Assembly (NCBI GenBank): GCA_024704765.1
Contig: JAKMXF010000017.1
Location: forward strand, 32,322-96,321
Origin: Oopsacas minuta
Lineage: Eukaryota > Animalia > Porifera
Length of the DNA stretch: 64,000 bases
Reading direction: 5' to 3'
Positions 21,609 to 30,662 of the stretch are shown here, in pieces. Position numbers and translations under genes: made by a program. The number at the start of each line of letters is the position of its first letter. Positions within the stretch are counted from its first letter, which is position 1. The notes under the pieces are model-generated. The model was not told the DNA's origin, made no database searches, and saw only the letters and a list, made by a program, of their open reading frames with translations.

Positions 21609-22674
21609 GTCGAATTCAACCTTAGTTTCCAATGAATATAATAAATAACCCTAACACTCTAGGAATACTTTATAGGTTGTTATTTTTATAGGAATTTTTA
21701 TGAAAGAAATTTGATATACTTTTGTAAGGTAATCTGCACATTATATCGTACTTGTCTGTCAGTTTATGTAATCCCTAATATGCTAGTACATAGAATGACA
21801 CAAATTGGATATTAATAATTGGCCGCTTGAATTGTGTAATATTACTTCTGCATTTTATCACTAATATTAAGATGATTATAAACTTACGTATAGATTCTCG
21901 TAATGTATATTGTAATGCTATTATTATGTCTAAAGGAATAAGAAATACGTTAGATATATATCGGATAATTTAATTAATTTATCCTATGTCTGAATCAACT
22001 GTAATAATCATTAGTGTAGATGGGAGCAACACTAACTCTTAGGAGAAAAAATAAATTTCCAATTCGGCAAATTAGTGAGGAAGGATTAGAAATTTCCGAT
22101 AATTAAAGAAGTTTCAAGAAGTTCCTACTACATAGTGCATGCTTGATCTGCCAACAGATACAAATGTTGTAAATTCAGTGCTTGAATAGCTTCAATTAAT
22201 TCTATAACGTTAGGAATTTCAGTAACTTGTAAGTATAAATATTTTGAATGATAGTAATCTCGTTCAGTAACTTTCTTTCTATGGACCTTCACTATCGTAT
22301 GTATGAGATCCTTTTGTTTTGGTCAATACATGGTAATTATTTGAATTTTTAGTACAGCTCCTATAGGGAGATACCCTAATGGCATGAACGATGTGCGACG
22401 TCCATACGTCCGTCCACGCGACCGCGCGAAATCCTGCATCCAATTAACATGAGAATTGTCATCCATATACATTTTGGTTAGAAGATTTGTACCTCGTGGT
22501 ATGAACTATTTTTGTGTACTTCATGTACACTGTAATTACAGTTCATAAATAAAATTCATTACACCATAAAATACATATTGAGTATAGTACTACTCATGGA
22601 CATAACAAAACAATTTATCTATCCTCTCAGATACCAAACGCAGTTTCTATTATATCCAACAAATGGAAACGTAA

Positions 22675-23826
22675 TCAAGAATGAGATTGAGACCTAAAGT
22701 CTTGAATAAAGGGAGGTCTTTGTTGATAATTCCTGTTTGAAACATCGAAGGTAGTCCTGTAATCTTCCATTAATGGCTGAATTAACCTTTCGTTTATATT
22801 TTTGTATTTATTCCTCTTCCCTATTACCTTTACTATTATTCCAATGCAAACAAGTAAGTATGCCAAAGAAAGTAACAAGACAAACGCGACCATCAGAATC
22901 ATTTGAACCATTCCATTGATACTGTACATAGAAAATATGACAGTTTCGTATTCATTGGGTAAATGTATTTTCGGGAATAGACCAAATGAGACAGAATTGA
23001 TGAAGTTTGGATAGAATAATACTATTACCATTCCTGATTGAAGGAAAATTGTAAAGAAATTTGATAGTAATATTAGAAAGCAGAATACTGTGAAACATTG
23101 TGTGTATAGAAACTGTGTGGCAATCCTGCGCTGTATTTTGTAATCAATTAGTGTTGAGTGCCAACGAGCTTCCTCACTTCTACCTTTCAATAAGCGATAG
23201 AAACTTCGAGTACACGAGATATAGATGAAGAAATCCACCAGACCGATAGGTAAATAAAATATCTGTAGCTGATATACTGACTCGTTAATACACGACAACA
23301 GTAGTAAGATGATTAATCGGACAGAAATACAAATACTGTAACATTTTATCCATTTTGTATATGGAATGTTGAGATATGCTCTCCTCAGGACAATTAAGAA
23401 TAAGCATCCAATCGCTGGTAGGATACTAACTGAAATGATAAATATATTGTATGCAGCAATTTCGATTTGATTAATGGGCTGGTAGGTTTTGGAATTAGAG
23501 AGAATTTTCACGTTTATCGATCTATTGCCATATAATATTATGTCCAAGTTTATACCAATAATATGAATCCCCGCGAATAAATTGCTTGCCATTTCTACTC
23601 CAGATATAATCAGTAGGAAAGTAAATATCATTGATTCTATCTTGAGGTTCTGTTTCACTTTAGAGAGGTCAATATTAAAAATTGTAGTTAAAGGAACATT
23701 TCTAATTTCTTTCTGGACTTTAAATCGTCGATAGGCTAAGTAACTGATGACAAATGACATCATGATAATATGCGGCAGCATGAAGAGAGGGCTTAGTAGA
23801 TCGATTATACGGAGAGATTTAGCCAT
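22675..23826 (-). CDS. Orphan seven-transmembrane protein (383 aa)
   Basis: Uninterrupted ORF with about 7 hydrophobic segments. No recognisable GPCR class motif. Confidence 0.75.
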   Translation of the reverse strand: MAKSLRIIDLLSPLFMLPHIIMMSFVISYLAYRRFKVQKEIRNVPLTTIFNIDLSKVKQNLKIESMIFTFLLIISGVEMASNLFAGIHIIGINLDIILYGNRSINVKILSNSKTYQPINQIEIAAYNIFIISVSILPAIGCLFLIVLRRAYLNIPYTKWIKCYSICISVRLIILLLLSCINESVYQLQIFYLPIGLVDFFIYISCTRSFYRLLKGRSEEARWHSTLIDYKIQRRIATQFLYTQCFTVFCFLILLSNFFTIFLQSGMVIVLFYPNFINSVSFGLFPKIHLPNEYETVIFSMYSINGMVQMILMVAFVLLLSLAYLLVCIGIIVKVIGKRNKYKNINERLIQPLMEDYRTTFDVSNRNYQQRPPFIQDFRSQSHS

Positions 23827-24491: not shown

Positions 24492-24957
24492 ATCTACTAA
24501 GCCCTCTCTTCATGCTGCTGCATATTATCATGATGTCATTTGTCATCAGTTACTTAGCCTATCGACGATTTAAAGTCCAGAAAGAAATTAGAAATGTTCC
24601 TTTAACTACAATTTTTAACATTGACCTCTCTAAAGTGAAACAGAACCTCAAGATAGAATCAATGATATTTACTTTCCTACTGATTATATCTGGAGTAGAA
24701 ATGGCAAGCAATTTATTCGCGGGGATTCATATTATTGGTATAAACTTGGACATAATATTATATGGCAATAGATCTCTCTAATTCCAAAACCTACCAGCCC
24801 ATTAATCAAATCGAAATTGCTGCATACAATATATTTATTATTTCAGTTAGTATCCTACCAACGATTGTATGCTTATTCTTAATGTTTCAAACAGGGATTA
24901 TCAATAAAGACCTCCCTTTATTCAAGACTTTAAGTCTCATTTTCATTCTTGATTACC
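24492..24957 (+). pseudogene. Inverted, internally deleted copy of the 7TM gene
   Basis: Near-identical to 22670-23802 in reverse complement, with a 17-bp and a ~650-bp internal deletion. Confidence 0.9.
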
Positions 24958-24993
24958 CTTTCTGATATTTTATACCAGGGCCGTAGCTAGGGG

Positions 24994-25463
24994 CAGAGCC
25001 GGATTAAGCAGTTTCGAGGCCCTGGGCTAAATATTCAATGAGGCCCTCGAACCCTTTTACCCCTAAAATTTATACAAGAGGAAATTTGTTAAATGTATTT
25101 CACTAAAGTTTTGTAGAATTCATTATAGTATAAATTGCATGACAGCCATCAAAAATTAACTTGTCGAGACTTCATTTCAACAAATGTCCTTAGTACATCC
25201 TCAAATTCAACTTTTTTGAGTAGTTCGCTTTCAATTGACATGAGAGATAGGTAATTAAGTCTTTCCTGTTTCATACAAGTTCTCTTTTCATTTAAAATAA
25301 GTTTCAGCTTTGAAAATGAGTGCTCTGCTGTTGCATTAGTTATCATCATGACAAATATATGCGCATCATAATTTCGACATTATGATGCGTGAGACACAGC
25401 TCAATTTGGGGGCCTTAGAGGCTGGGGCCCTGAGGCCTGTGTCCCATGGTTAATCGGGCACTG
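24994..25463 (-). mobile_element. Deleted hAT element containing the C-terminal dimerisation-domain fragment
   Basis: Imperfect TIRs CAGAGCCGGATTAAGC / CAGTGCCCGATTAACC. ORF 25149-25349 (TNATAEHSFSKLKLILNEKRTCMKQERLNYLSLMSIE) matches the hAT dimerisation motif. No TSD. Confidence 0.8.
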
Positions 25464-25889
25464 CGAATACCTTAACTGGAATTCAGGGGCACCTGGGCTG
25501 CAGCCAAGTTAGCCCATTGGAAAATCTGGCCTTGCTTGATCCATGTCCCTAGTAACAAGTCTCCATCGACCTCTCTCTCTCTCTATCAGGATTGTGTTCA
25601 TATTAGTGAACACAATCCTGATGATAGAGACAACAGACTTTTGATAATTCCAATTATTGGAAGAATAACTAAATTGGAACTGAAACTAACCAGAAGACAC
25701 CTGCACTACATACACTAATTGTGTAATTGTATAACAGACATAACTCTAACCAAGAAACATCCCTAAATTTACAGGACTTACTATAGCAACCATTGACGTA
25801 CATTGGTATTCTCAAGTTACACAAGTATAAGATAGAGTCTGTAATAATTCAAAATATTATTTCTAACAAACCCAAATCTAAACAATAAA

Positions 25890-27049
25890 ATGGCAACAAA
25901 TCAGCCCATAATTGTACCAGTTAATGAATTGGCACAATTCGATTATGTCGCTACTCAAATCATGAATAAGTTCGATCTCCTAATTAAGCAGCTGATCGCG
26001 AGGAGGGACGCTCTCCTTGGGAAACTCAGAGATATGAAATGGAATATTTATCAAAAGAGAGTACCCGTAAGGCAGCCATGCAGGAACTGGCCAATACTCA
26101 ACGACACATGGAGGCGCTAAGTCTGAAAGTTAATGAGAACAAAGATCTCCATCAACAGATCACTGACCTATATCAACAGCGCATCAAACAGCTGGAGACT
26201 CCCACAAAATTCCAGCAGCCCTTCTTCTCCTGTACGACGCTGTCCCAACTACGAACTCAGATCGCTGAGTTCGGAGAGATGAAAGAATGGGAGCTAGACT
26301 ACTCTGAAGAAAAAACCTATCCTAACTGTTGGGAAGGAAGGGTACGGTAATAATGAATTGAATGCTGCAGGTCTATCTCTAGATGAACCAAATCAGTTAA
26401 TTTACATAGCTGATTATCATAACAGTCGTATCCAAGTTGTGTCTTTTGAAGGAAAATTCTTGAAAAGATTTGGACAAGACATACTCGAAGGACCATGGGG
26501 AATAGCTGTGGCAGAAGATAACGTCTTCATTACGGACAGAGAACTCCACGCTTTGTTACAGTTCAACAAGAAGGATTACAAACTAGTGAAGAGGACTGGT
26601 AACGAAGAAGCAGGAGATGGAGAGCTAAATGAACCACTTGGACTCTGTGTTCACTACAATGGAGACGTGTATATGGCTGATTGTTACAATCACAGAGTTT
26701 CTATATTCTCTAAAGCTCTTGAATTTGTTAATTGTTTGGGTACTCAACAGCTACAACATCCTCAGGATGTTAAAGTTACTCCCACTAGCATTGTAGTGCT
26801 AGACTACAGTCCTAATTGTGTACACTTCTACTCGGGAAGTGGACACCTTATAAACTCATGTACTACTTTTGGGCAGGATGGTGGTGTATCGTCCCTTCTT
26901 CTGTAGTTTGGATGTAGCATGGAATATTCTTATTACTGATCTTTCCGTCACAATATTAAGATACTATCTCCATCAGGAGAGCTATTACACACCATAGGGA
27001 GGATAGAAGATGGGAGAGAAGAATTTACAAATCCATATGGTATTAGTAC
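25890..27049 (+). pseudogene. Coiled-coil + NHL-repeat (TRIM-NHL-like) gene, frameshifted and 3'-truncated by the Transib element
   Basis: Successive frames give a coiled coil, EWELDY, then NHL repeats (IYIADYHNSRIQV, GPWGIAV, PLGLCV..GDVYMADCYNHRVSIF). The last repeat, HTIGR..EFTNPYGIS, stops at CACAGTG. Confidence 0.85.
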
Positions 27050-30047
27050 CACAGTGGCACGGCATGTGGAAATAGGTGAAAAAAATATAACTTCAAATTG
27101 CTTTATAGTGTTGATATTTGAATTCAGCACCCCCACAAACCTCGGAAAACATTTGACATCTCTACAATAGACTTTCCATTTAGCTCCTACGTCTATTCCA
27201 ATGAAAGCATAATTGAAATTCGAAAGATTGATTTATGGTTTCAATTTTCGGTCATGATGTAATTTTGAATAATATGGATTCTCTACGTCAAATAACTGCT
27301 ATTTATAGTATACCAATCGAAAGCTCTTATGTTGCTGAATAATAAATCACGTTAATCTTGGCTCCAATGAACAGATGGAATTTACTATTCTCATTTTAAA
27401 CAAGCTTGTTCGTACAAGTGCAATAAATAGAAACACGTTTCATTAAAACTCTAGTACTTTTTTTGCCTTCACTTGCGGAACTTTCCATTGCACTTTCCTA
27501 ATAGCTCTTTTCGTCCTCTACAAAATACACTTTAAATTATGGTGTCAGGAAGTGTCAACGATATTTTTTTTTGCGATTTTAAATATAATCCATTCACAAT
27601 TATCTAATTTTGGCCCATATAAATCATAAATAATTGTTGTGGTTGTTTATTAGCACATTTTTCATTATGAATAACGAAGATGCATACACGTTCTTAACTG
27701 CACAAAAGAATAAAACAATCACTTCTCTCGCGTCCTCGTTTATTGTCCTCAATAATTTGGAAGAAACAGAGCATGATACAGTTCGGAGAAAATTTTCGAC
27801 CCTCAGAGAAGATAGGAGAGAATACCTGAAACGAGCCGATATAACTACTTGGAATGTGATACCTTTTCATACACCACTTAAACACCCGAGATTGAGTACA
27901 GGTTATCAATGCTCAGATGAAGTCATGGTGATAGGGAGTGTTTCTTCTAGCCAATCAACCTCTGTTTTCGAAGAAGATTTTAGTAAGCCCACCCGTAAGC
28001 CTCTGAGGGAATTATCAACTAAAGGTCTTCGCAGCCGATTGTCCTCCTTACTAACACATCTTGAAAAGGTTGCTGTACAAGAGAATGTTTCCAGTAAAGA
28101 ACTATCCTGTTACCTGATGATGCTATGTTCACAGACTGAATCCGACTTTACTACTACCAAGTTCTGTAAAGAAATTATTGCTAAGGGAAGCTTCGGTCCA
28201 GTCTGCAATGAACTGACCTCCGATAAAGCTGCGTTCTTGATGGATTCTTTAGAAATTGGAAAGAAGAAATACATCGATTTAAGACGTTTATTGCTTTCAG
28301 ATGTCCAGCTTCCAGGTTACAATCGATTAGCTACCCATCGATCTCAAATTTGCTTGACTAATGACATCTTTCAGTTGATCGAGAACATCGGGTAGGCATT
28401 GCTGTATCTTACAAAAAGCTTCTGACTCATACAGTAAACAGAATATTGACTGCTTCTGCCAATGAAATTCCCAGCGCCAGCAATCCTAAAAGGATACGAA
28501 TTTCAGATGGACTTGACGGTTCTGGCTCTCACCGGGTTTATCAGCAAGCGACTCACCCCAATATTTCAACAAAAAGTTTTATTTTATTCGGGTTTAAGGT
28601 GATTTCCATATCCGACACCGATAACAAACTGATTTGGAAAAACCCTCTACCAAATTCTCCTTTCTCAATTAGACCCGTTGCGATACTAGCTCTACAGGAG
28701 AACGAAGACAATATTCGATATCTTATGGATACACTAATCAATAAGGAGTCCACAGAGATAACGGTAAAGGGTTTAGAACTAACAAGCGGATTTTGTGAAG
28801 TTGAAATTCAACGTTCACAATTGGATGGCAAAATGGCTAAGATTATTAGTGGAGTTGGGGGTGCATGTTGCCAGTTCTGTACAGCGACATTCAAACAAAT
28901 CCATGATCCGGATATCGTAAAAGACGGTTTTCCAATTAATCGATCCATCACAGACCTGAAAGTATTATTTGATGAAGTTAACGAAGAGGAGTTTCTATCA
29001 TTATCTTCTGACAACAGATTCAACGTTACACACAGACCAATATCTGACTTAGAAATCATACCCAGTTCGCCTTTGCATGCATATCTCCGATGTTTTGGCT
29101 GGTTTTTACATCTAATTAGCCATTTGCACGCAGGAGTATTTAAGTGGTCACCAACTTCTAAGAGAGTCTCAGATGCTAAAACTTTCGTTACAAGTTTAAT
29201 TAAAGACAATCTCAATATGATTATTGACATCCCTTCAACACAAGGTGGCACAACGACTACTGGTAATGTGGTAAGACGATGCTTGATAAGAAAGGATGAC
29301 AACGATCAAGATTTCCTCTACTGGGTTTTGACAGTGATCCCGTCTGAGTTCAAGTCCCACATAATTGAAATTCACACATGCCTAGGAGCAATCCTACGCG
29401 TCTATAATAGCAGCAGAAGAGTGGATACAGAAGAACTAGCGCTTGTTTGCAGTAATATCTACCAGTCAATTCTCTGTGCATTTCCTTGGGCTAATGTTTC
29501 CCCGACGTTACACAAACTGTTAGCACATGCACCGGAAATCATCTCAACGTTTAATGATGGACATGGGCTAGAGAACTTATCTGAAGAAGGACTAGAGGCT
29601 TCTAACAAATATATTCGGAGATACAGAGATCGTCTTGCTCGCAAGTTTTCATTTGAAGAAAATTTAAAGGATGTATTTGTTCGATTGATTTCTCACAGTG
29701 ATCCCATGCTGTTAATGAATCGCAAGTTTTCTATTCCAAGGCCTCCATCTAGCCAAGGACTTAGAAGTAGCCAAGATATTTTAGTGAACACCCTTATTCG
29801 TGATCATGAAGATCATAATGATGATTAAAAGTAACCTCTCAATCGATTAATAGAAAATTTGGGGAATTTTCACACCTCAGATAGGTGACAATGACGTCAT
29901 AACTTTGTCACCTGAAGGGATAGAGAAAAAATGAGTATCCCATTCGATTCATTGGGCTCGAAAACCTATATGACAATAATACATTTTGAGGACCTATGTG
30001 CCATCAAAATGCCTATTTCCACATTCTGACCATTTCGTGCCACTGTG
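27050..30047 (+). mobile_element. Transib / RAG1-like DNA transposon (2998 bp) with RSS-heptamer termini
   Basis: Both ends start CACAGTGGCACG (27050-27061; reverse complement of 30036-30047) and share ATGTGGAAATAGG internally. It encodes a RAG1-core-like transposase. The 5-bp flanks differ (AGTAC vs CCAAG). Confidence 0.9.
27667..29828 (+). CDS. RAG1-core-like (Transib) DDE transposase, ~720 aa, split by one frameshift near 28368-28372
   Basis: Motifs SDGLDGSGSH (D600-like), SQLDGKM (D708-like), CCQFC (Zn Cys pair), PTLHKLLAHAPEII (cf. RAG1 HKTLAHVPEII) and SEEGLEASNKYIRRYR (E962 region). ORFs 27634-28395 and 28446-29828 join if one T is added to atcttt|cag. Confidence 0.9.
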
Positions 30048-30662
30048 CCAAGCCCCCCCTAAAGTTTACTTAGCCCCTCCTAACACTACGCTATGGCTAC
30101 GGCCCTGTTTTATACACTATTTTGCTATACAAATGAAATATCTATTTTGTGTATTCATCTTAAATTAAAAATATTTGGAATGAACTCATTATCCAACCTC
30201 GTATAGTGTATCCATAAACCATATCATGCGTTCCAGATTCCTTCTGTTGGCCACTTTTGAATGGACGTTGCGATTTCTCGTGAATAAATTAATTAATACA
30301 TACCAATGCCATGATACTAATACCACCGCTAGACAAATTGGGTGGTTTGTGGAGCTAGTAGTATTGTTGCAGTTGTCATGCAATGGTGGTCAGGACGGAC
30401 CTAATGTAGCGACCAAATACAGCAGACATATTCAAGTAAACAATATTAACTTTTATATTAATTATCAATGACTTGGATTGTGTATCAGTGATATCTAAGA
30501 TAGGGGGTTCTAAGCAGCAACCTAGGTTGCTGAGTGCCCTCAAGCTTCATCAACCTATATAGTGACGGAAATCATATATAATAAGGGGGGATTTTTATGT
30601 ACCAATCTAGCTTGCCGGTTAGAAAATTTCTATAAGAGAAAAATGAGTTGTCTAATTCCAGT

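Follow-up and report, generated by a model that had tools for sequence, protein, structure and literature searches.

A possible Pack-TIR-like hAT relic enclosing an NHL pseudogene and a RAG1-like Transib element in Oopsacas minuta

The DNA analysed here (the window) is a stretch of 64,000 nucleotides from the glass sponge Oopsacas minuta (GenBank assembly GCA_024704765.1, contig JAKMXF010000017.1, positions 32,322 to 96,321 of the forward strand). Between window positions 24968 and 30115 the two ends of one hAT transposon, termed hAT-A, enclose a complete miniature inverted-repeat transposable element (MITE) of a second hAT family (hAT-B), a fragment of a host locus encoding an NHL-repeat protein, and a structurally complete Transib, a transposon with a RAG1-like transposase. 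The structure is real and cleanly delimited; it is single-copy in the assembly and, as a relic, probably immobile. We propose that it is a Pack-TIR-like derivative of hAT-A, with host sequence held between terminal inverted repeats (TIRs) and a target site duplication (TSD), that was later remodelled by two nested transposons; we would give this history about an even chance of being correct. A sequence-only reading of the same DNA had taken the segment for a composite transposon, an interpretation that is partly supported by the results below. The components, in order along the window, are as follows (CDS, coding sequence).

24968-24975, no strand: left TSD copy, TTTTATAC, by direct reading, with the same letters as 30108-30115
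24976-24993, plus strand: A end of hAT-A, the TIR CAGGGCCGTAGC and 6 bp (TAGGGG), by BLAST to copy L067 and alignment of family copies
24994-25534, minus strand: complete 541-bp hAT-B MITE with TIRs CAGAGCCGGATT and CAAGGCCAGATT, by a continuous alignment to copy L005
25535-25584, plus strand: upstream block of the NHL locus, ∼49 bp, collinear with L078 and C145 (L113) across 25534/25535
25585-25622, no strand: palindrome with perfect 16-bp arms and a 6-bp spacer, by repeat search and comparison with L078, L081 and L083
25600-27049, plus strand: NHL-repeat gene copy, upstream region and CDS from the ATG at 25890 (Pfam NHL PF01436, E=3e-21)
27050-30047, plus strand: structurally complete Transib (RAG1-like) of 2998 bp, CACAGTG...CACTGTG, with siblings aligned over 1-2998
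30048-30107, plus strand: B end of hAT-A, its final 60 bp including the TIR, 98% identical to L058, L061 and L068
30108-30115, no strand: right TSD copy, TTTTATAC, by direct reading

The outer hAT-A ends and their family

The 12-bp TIR at 24976-24987 has its perfect reverse complement at 30096-30107, and since an identical 8-bp TSD stands on both sides, the outer ends entered one target site together. A chance match of an 8-mer at the base composition of the window has p∼7e-5 by our own arithmetic, and in a blind scan of the whole window for TSD plus TIR structures the 24968-30115 pair was the sole hAT-like result outside an inverted duplication. All searches beyond the window covered a single assembly of 61.46 Mb in 365 contigs. 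The TIR 12-mer occurs there 47 times in forward and 51 times in reverse orientation (98 in total), against 0 and 1 in a reversed-sequence control. Nineteen other TIR pairs were inspected, and 13 of them belong to the outer family while 6 come from a different MITE family with the same 12-mer.

Of the 13 hAT-A copies, eight are MITEs (298–620 bp), four measure 2.7–2.8 kb and one measures 1.4 kb. A perfect 8-bp TSD flanks 10 of them, and one more has a 7/8 match. The 8-bp TSD and the short TIRs beginning with CAG in a multi-copy family place hAT-A in the hAT superfamily. Open reading frames (ORFs) in the long copies are broken. When the ORF pieces of copy L057 were compared with Pfam, DUF4371 scored 42.8 bits (cut-off 32.1), zf-C17orf113 fell below its cut-off and there was no match to the C-terminal hAT dimerisation domain; DUF4371 and the C17orf113-type zinc finger are both found in hAT-derived proteins. 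On these comparisons the outer ends are genuine paired ends of one multi-copy hAT family. BLAST against full-length and MITE copies confines the hAT-A sequence in the unit to 18 bp (24976-24993) and 60 bp (30048-30107), with none in the 5,054 bp between them, and the 60-bp B end has one mismatch to several siblings. The sequence-only reading is thus borne out in its description of the shell: perfect 12-bp TIRs within an exact 8-bp TSD, as read directly and counted genome-wide; arrival at one target site with a hAT signature; and, by BLAST against the family, only 18 bp on the left and 60 bp on the right that belong to the outer element.

Several further observations concern this family and its surroundings. 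A MITE-like family of 137–176 bp with an identical TIR CAGGGCCGTAGC (L062, L063, L066, L070, L074 and L075, for example G000:C6:100538-100706) differs from hAT-A in its subterminal sequence and has no 8-bp TSD, and four of its copies with a common flank (ATATAT...) seem to lie within a larger repeat. A 1.3–1.4-kb hAT-A derivative is present at two loci that are 84% identical (L061, G000:C122:735603-736999, and L021, G000:C364); its interior of ∼900 bp has no counterpart in the 2.8-kb element and, over part of its length, matches sequence flanking hAT-A copy L009. A 13-kb TIR pair on C33 was considered as a second cargo-bearing element and was rejected, as its two ends are of unlike types and the 8-mers beside them do not match. 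An inverted duplication just upstream of the insertion site pairs 24492-24883 with 23393-23801 in reverse (95% identity) and 24882-24956 with 22671-22745 (93%), and a 67-aa ORF resembling a membrane protein lies in its right arm at 24762-24965.

The hAT-B, NHL and Transib components

The sequence-only reading had listed two pieces between the outer ends, a deleted hAT and a third hAT-like end. Both belong to a single hAT-B MITE, as L005 aligns continuously from one to the other. The element is 88–95% identical to its siblings, and its minus strand carries a 66-aa ORF at 25149-25349 that is a remnant of the hAT C-terminal dimerisation domain (Pfam PF05699, E=9.2e-5). Siblings L002 and L003 have both hAT-B ends and 8-bp TSDs (GGTTTCAG and CGTATGAA), whereas the window copy has no TSD, with GCTAGGGG on its left against CTTGATCC on its right. 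At the left junction the motif GGGGC[T/A]GAGCC is common to hAT-A and the hAT-B terminus in 10 of 11 positions and the right junction has no microhomology; both hAT-A junctions now lie on the termini of other transposons, so that these may no longer be the original breakpoints.

The NHL-locus fragment as a whole spans 25535-27049. Paralogs L078 and C145 run collinearly across its left boundary, and the possibility that the 49-bp block at 25535 is a natural repeat terminus was rejected on that basis. In the palindrome at 25585-25622 the left arm repeats NHL upstream sequence in inverted orientation, a feature private to this copy, and at the same junction L078 has 558 bp extra. The palindrome looks like a fold-back repair scar, of the kind left by templated synthesis in break repair, and such a scar within the cargo would mean that break repair took place at the locus.

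The gene copy itself has four private frameshift deletions (at ∼26040, ∼26302, ∼26881 and ∼26944) and is truncated ∼21 codons before the stop, while all paralogs continue past 27048 and reach the stop. Judged by its reading frame it is a pseudogene, as the sequence-only reading had stated. Nine paralogs are 86–92% identical to it at the DNA level, and intact intronless ORFs of 408–409 aa were found in 7 of 10 paralog loci inspected. The window copy has a terminal branch of 0.049 and its neighbour in the tree, L080, a branch of 0.050. The best paralogs are 89–92% identical and none lies in cis; a parental copy of >92% identity was not found in the assembly, which excludes a recent copy-based capture and a recent source locus.

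The wider NHL family consists of young, dispersed, intronless copies encoding 408–409 aa with a coiled-coil N-terminus (contigs C356, C6, C166, C48, C131, C35, C321 and C45). Their 86–92% identity extends over upstream and 3' regions, with at least two types of upstream sequence. More distant copies form a tandem cluster on C66, and a divergent paralog (L088, G000:C362) contains a hAT-like MITE of ∼90 bp inserted at ∼2435-2525, with ends CAGGGCCGGCGC and GCTCCAGCCCTG.

The Transib has at least 12 siblings elsewhere that align over exactly 1-2998 at 98–99% identity. Its protein matches HzTransib of Helicoverpa (6pqn, E=1.8e-23) and amphioxus RAG1L (6b40, E=1.5e-11), and scores 24.5 bits against Pfam RAG1, just below the cut-off of 25; on this evidence the element at 27050-30047 carries a RAG1-core-like DDE transposase. 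The sequence-only reading had described an entire RAG1-like transposon. This holds for the 2998-bp structure but not for the coding sequence, as a 1-bp deletion private to this copy, in the T-run at 28368-28371, interrupts the transposase frame (27667-29828). The sibling comparison used flanks and one fetched 181-bp segment, in which C310, C325, C20 and C244 read TTTT and keep the frame open throughout the T-run region. An intron as the cause of the break was rejected, given the one extra T and open frame of these four siblings. By their reading frames, therefore, the NHL and Transib passengers are both coding-defective copies.

Ten Transib siblings were sampled at their ends. CACAGTG starts all 10 and CACTGTG ends 9 (the right end of C177 was unresolved), and a perfect 5-bp TSD was found in 7, with a 4/5 match in one. 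The window copy has no 5-bp TSD, its flanks being AGTAC and CCAAG. A full-length Transib of 96% identity at L105/L106 (G000:C5:107202-110194) is likewise without a matching 5-bp TSD (AGATC against AAGAG), so TSD loss is not unique to the window copy. The earlier statement that the inner elements lack their own TSDs is correct for both hAT-B and Transib, though their siblings carry them.

Tests for movement as a unit and the proposed history of the locus

The sequence-only reading had proposed that two MITE ends mobilise the intervening DNA, and that an empty site or sibling copies at other loci should be sought. Both searches were run. No second copy of the hAT-A/hAT-B, hAT-B/NHL, NHL/Transib or Transib/hAT-A junction exists in the whole assembly, all matches ending at the junction concerned. 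Neither an empty site nor a haplotig was found in the assembly, in which the right flank is unique. The left flank has a single paralog, which is inverted, lies inside the window and ends 19 bp before the TIR, and hence provides no paralogous empty site. A composite transposon or macrotransposon is bounded by two elements, or by an element and a fractured element, and moves as a whole. Here 18 bp and 60 bp from a single element of one family form the bounds, with no inner MITE ends, and the single assembly holds no sibling junction and no second right flank.

Other hAT elements need subterminal sequence in cis. All the remaining hAT-A derivatives with TSDs, which represent at least five deletion forms, retain no less than ∼181 bp at the A end and 101 bp at the B end, although the uniformity of these lengths is partly due to shared ancestry among the MITEs, and the two-copy form with the foreign interior of ∼900 bp keeps 167 bp and 317 bp of its ends. 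This suggests that hAT-A mobility requires subterminal sequence in cis, and because the other copies all keep long ends, the present structure with 18 bp and 60 bp probably cannot move.

All four inner junctions fall at exact transposon termini, with the interrupted NHL locus on the NHL side and hAT-A on the outer side. L078 and C145 are contiguous over the hAT-B/NHL junction and the paralogs are continuous over the NHL/Transib junction, so on the NHL side both flanks resemble unremarkable insertion sites within a single NHL locus. Since siblings of hAT-B and Transib have TSDs and the window copies do not, one flank of each would have been altered during or after insertion, leaving the terminus intact. 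Judged by divergence, the Transib is the youngest component, and hAT-B and the NHL pseudogene are older, because the Transib is 98–99% identical to its siblings, as compared with 88–95% for hAT-B and a 4.9% branch and four frameshifts for NHL.

In the history that we favour, one hAT-A copy would have inserted once, at TTTTATAC, and its interior would since have been lost. Host DNA would have been placed between the hAT-A ends to yield a Pack-TIR-type derivative, either by gap-filling repair or with an earlier, longer-ended element as the carrier. hAT-B, and then the young Transib, would have inserted into this cargo. Finally, abortive or otherwise aberrant transposition involving one end of each element would have produced flanking deletions anchored at the transposon terminus, with the loss of one TSD copy, of the remaining cargo and of subterminal hAT-A as far as positions +18 and −60. 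This history is supported by the mere 18 and 60 bp of hAT-A that are left, by the lack of sibling junctions, by the apparent repair scar within the cargo and by the second derivative with a foreign interior in the same family. Terminus-anchored flanking deletions are well known for P elements and for Ac/Ds. Single-copy Pack-TIRs of animals are reported to form mostly by transposition-independent gap filling (PMC8277862).

Several points weigh against this history. It requires many events, a capture followed by two insertions and by one flank deletion for each inserted element, all of them inferred, and we know of no documented terminus-anchored flanking deletion for Transib. The parental NHL copy is absent from the assembly at >92% identity. 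An old capture predicts more decay than one mismatch in 78 bp and a perfect TSD, a mild tension that we estimate to be of the size of a modestly uncommon chance outcome, and clean outer ends beside older-looking cargo fit a recent arrival somewhat better. Dating of shell against cargo by one mismatch in 78 bp and four NHL frameshifts has too little power to order the events. Both deletions end a short way inside the hAT-A termini, which is a coincidence, albeit one that ascertainment favours.

A recent arrival is what is implied if hAT-A transposase, working on the 12-bp TIRs, cut and pasted the present 5.1-kb unit as a composite transposon or macrotransposon, with NHL and Transib as passengers, a course of events that we regard as unlikely. 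The perfect TIRs and perfect 8-bp TSD would follow directly from it, the recent arrival of an older composite would explain a shell with at most one change in 78 bp around an older-looking NHL copy and hAT-B, and the missing parent locus would be expected as cut-and-paste leaves no source copy. There are also precedents, in that maize Ac macrotransposons excise and reinsert (PMC9910405) and Ds1 is mobile though it has little in common with Ac beyond the TIRs (PMC3260210). The zero count of sibling junctions in the assembly speaks against such a move, as do the longer subterminal sequences (at least ∼181 bp and 101 bp) of all other mobilised hAT-A members and the lack of inner MITE ends, hence of two elements flanking DNA; nor does it give an account of hAT-A junctions that fall exactly on the termini of two TSD-less transposons. 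Those junctions would be explained if transposases had cut at the left end of hAT-B and at the right end of the Transib within an NHL locus, and the fragment so freed had been end-joined in one step into a gap in a resident hAT-A, opened for example by attempted excision or by breakage at the hAT-A G/C runs. Such a capture fits the four junctions on exact termini, with flanks that look original on the NHL side and secondary on the hAT-A side, the absence of the source copy from the assembly, and hAT-A breakpoints beside G/C homopolymer runs. It also fits the clean 3'-OH element ends that hAT and Transib/RAG enzymes leave. It is, however, quite improbable, as two different transposases would have to cleave simultaneously at one end each, for which we know of no precedent, and the 10/11 similarity at the left junction is equally compatible with homology-guided joining and with blunt capture.

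Two further explanations appear highly improbable. The published genome is a hybrid SPAdes assembly in 365 scaffolds (∼61 Mb, 36% G+C; PMC10280926) that combines Illumina data and corrected PacBio reads from different individuals, a method prone to mis-resolving repeats, and a wrong path through repeated hAT-B and Transib nodes might have spliced an NHL locus into a hAT-A locus. The Transib is indeed a 3-kb repeat of 99% identity in at least 12 copies, and another sampled copy, on C5, likewise has no TSD. However, the same TSD on both sides means that the path must leave and re-enter one locus through two different repeats, two loci in which hAT-B and Transib share order and orientation are needed, and the hAT-B copies, at 88–95% identity, are too divergent for collapse at k=99. 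A comparable exchange could have happened in the genome itself, by double ectopic recombination or gene conversion between a hAT-A with nested hAT-B and Transib and an NHL locus with the same elements, so that the NHL segment was pasted in. This would account for complete TSD-less elements with flanks from two loci, but calls for two independent loci with the same element pair in the same order, orientation and spacing, and neither a partner locus nor a reciprocal product was found in the assembly. Like the assembly error, it can be given very little credence, and the Pack-TIR-like history remains the one that we prefer.

Relation to known systems and significance

The relic resembles the Pack-TIRs described in animals (Tan et al. 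2021, Nat Commun, PMC8277862) in that TIRs and a TSD surround non-transposon host sequence, here the NHL fragment at 25535-27049, and in being single-copy. It differs in that nearly the whole transposon has been replaced, with 18 and 60 bp kept, whereas the gaps reported have a median of 4.6% of the element (PMC8277862). It also differs in that no parental copy was found nearby or at high identity, and in that two complete transposons enclose its cargo, with the junctions lying at their exact termini.

The macrotransposons and composite insertions of maize Ac/fAc (Huang & Dooner 2008; Zhang et al. 2014, PMC4270019; Sharma et al. 2022, PMC9910405) share with it correctly oriented hAT termini, kilobases of foreign DNA and an 8-bp TSD. 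They are bounded by a full element and a substantial fractured element, and their excision or reinsertion has been observed, in contrast to the 18 and 60 bp found here without signs of movement as a unit. Heterogeneous Ds elements and the products of abortive gap repair (Ds1, Ds-del) are similar in being non-autonomous hAT elements that have little beyond the termini in common with the autonomous element, the interior having been replaced or deleted in situ; Ds families are, unlike the unit described here, which is unique in the assembly, multi-copy and demonstrably mobile (PMC3260210).

Flanking deletions anchored at a transposon arise from hybrid element insertion by P elements and from sister-chromatid or reversed-ends transposition by Ac. 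The window has the same features, a complete element with an intact terminus, one flank replaced and no TSD, although here such deletions are deduced from structure alone. The genome paper on O. minuta reports 15.4% DNA transposons, and its main text mentions neither Transib nor NHL (PMC10280926). The relic belongs to a kind already catalogued in animals, be it Pack-TIRs or nested cut-and-paste elements.

The sequence-only reading had seen in the segment a route for spreading both NHL genes and a RAG-like recombinase. There is no support for the spreading of either by a hAT unit. Within 1.5 kb of the nine close NHL paralogs neither hAT-A, hAT-B nor Transib ends were found, and a scan found no TIR plus TSD structure around them, so that a spread of the NHL family by hAT shells is unsupported for these nine. 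The Transib spreads by itself, as is apparent from the perfect 5-bp TSDs of the 7 siblings among the 10 sampled. With both passengers dead copies, no functional consequence is expected.

That a hAT transposase moved a 5-kb package, an NHL copy and a whole Transib, from 12-bp TIRs with ends of 18 bp and 60 bp is in our judgement rather doubtful. If true, one cut-and-paste transposon in a glass sponge would have carried host genes and an element of another superfamily, a natural case of macrotransposition in an animal that would bear on the shuffling of genes and recombinases. On present evidence, the locus, set in a transposon-rich region, is a further Pack-TIR-like relic in single copy, and its main use is as a well-dissected record of TSD loss by nested cut-and-paste elements.

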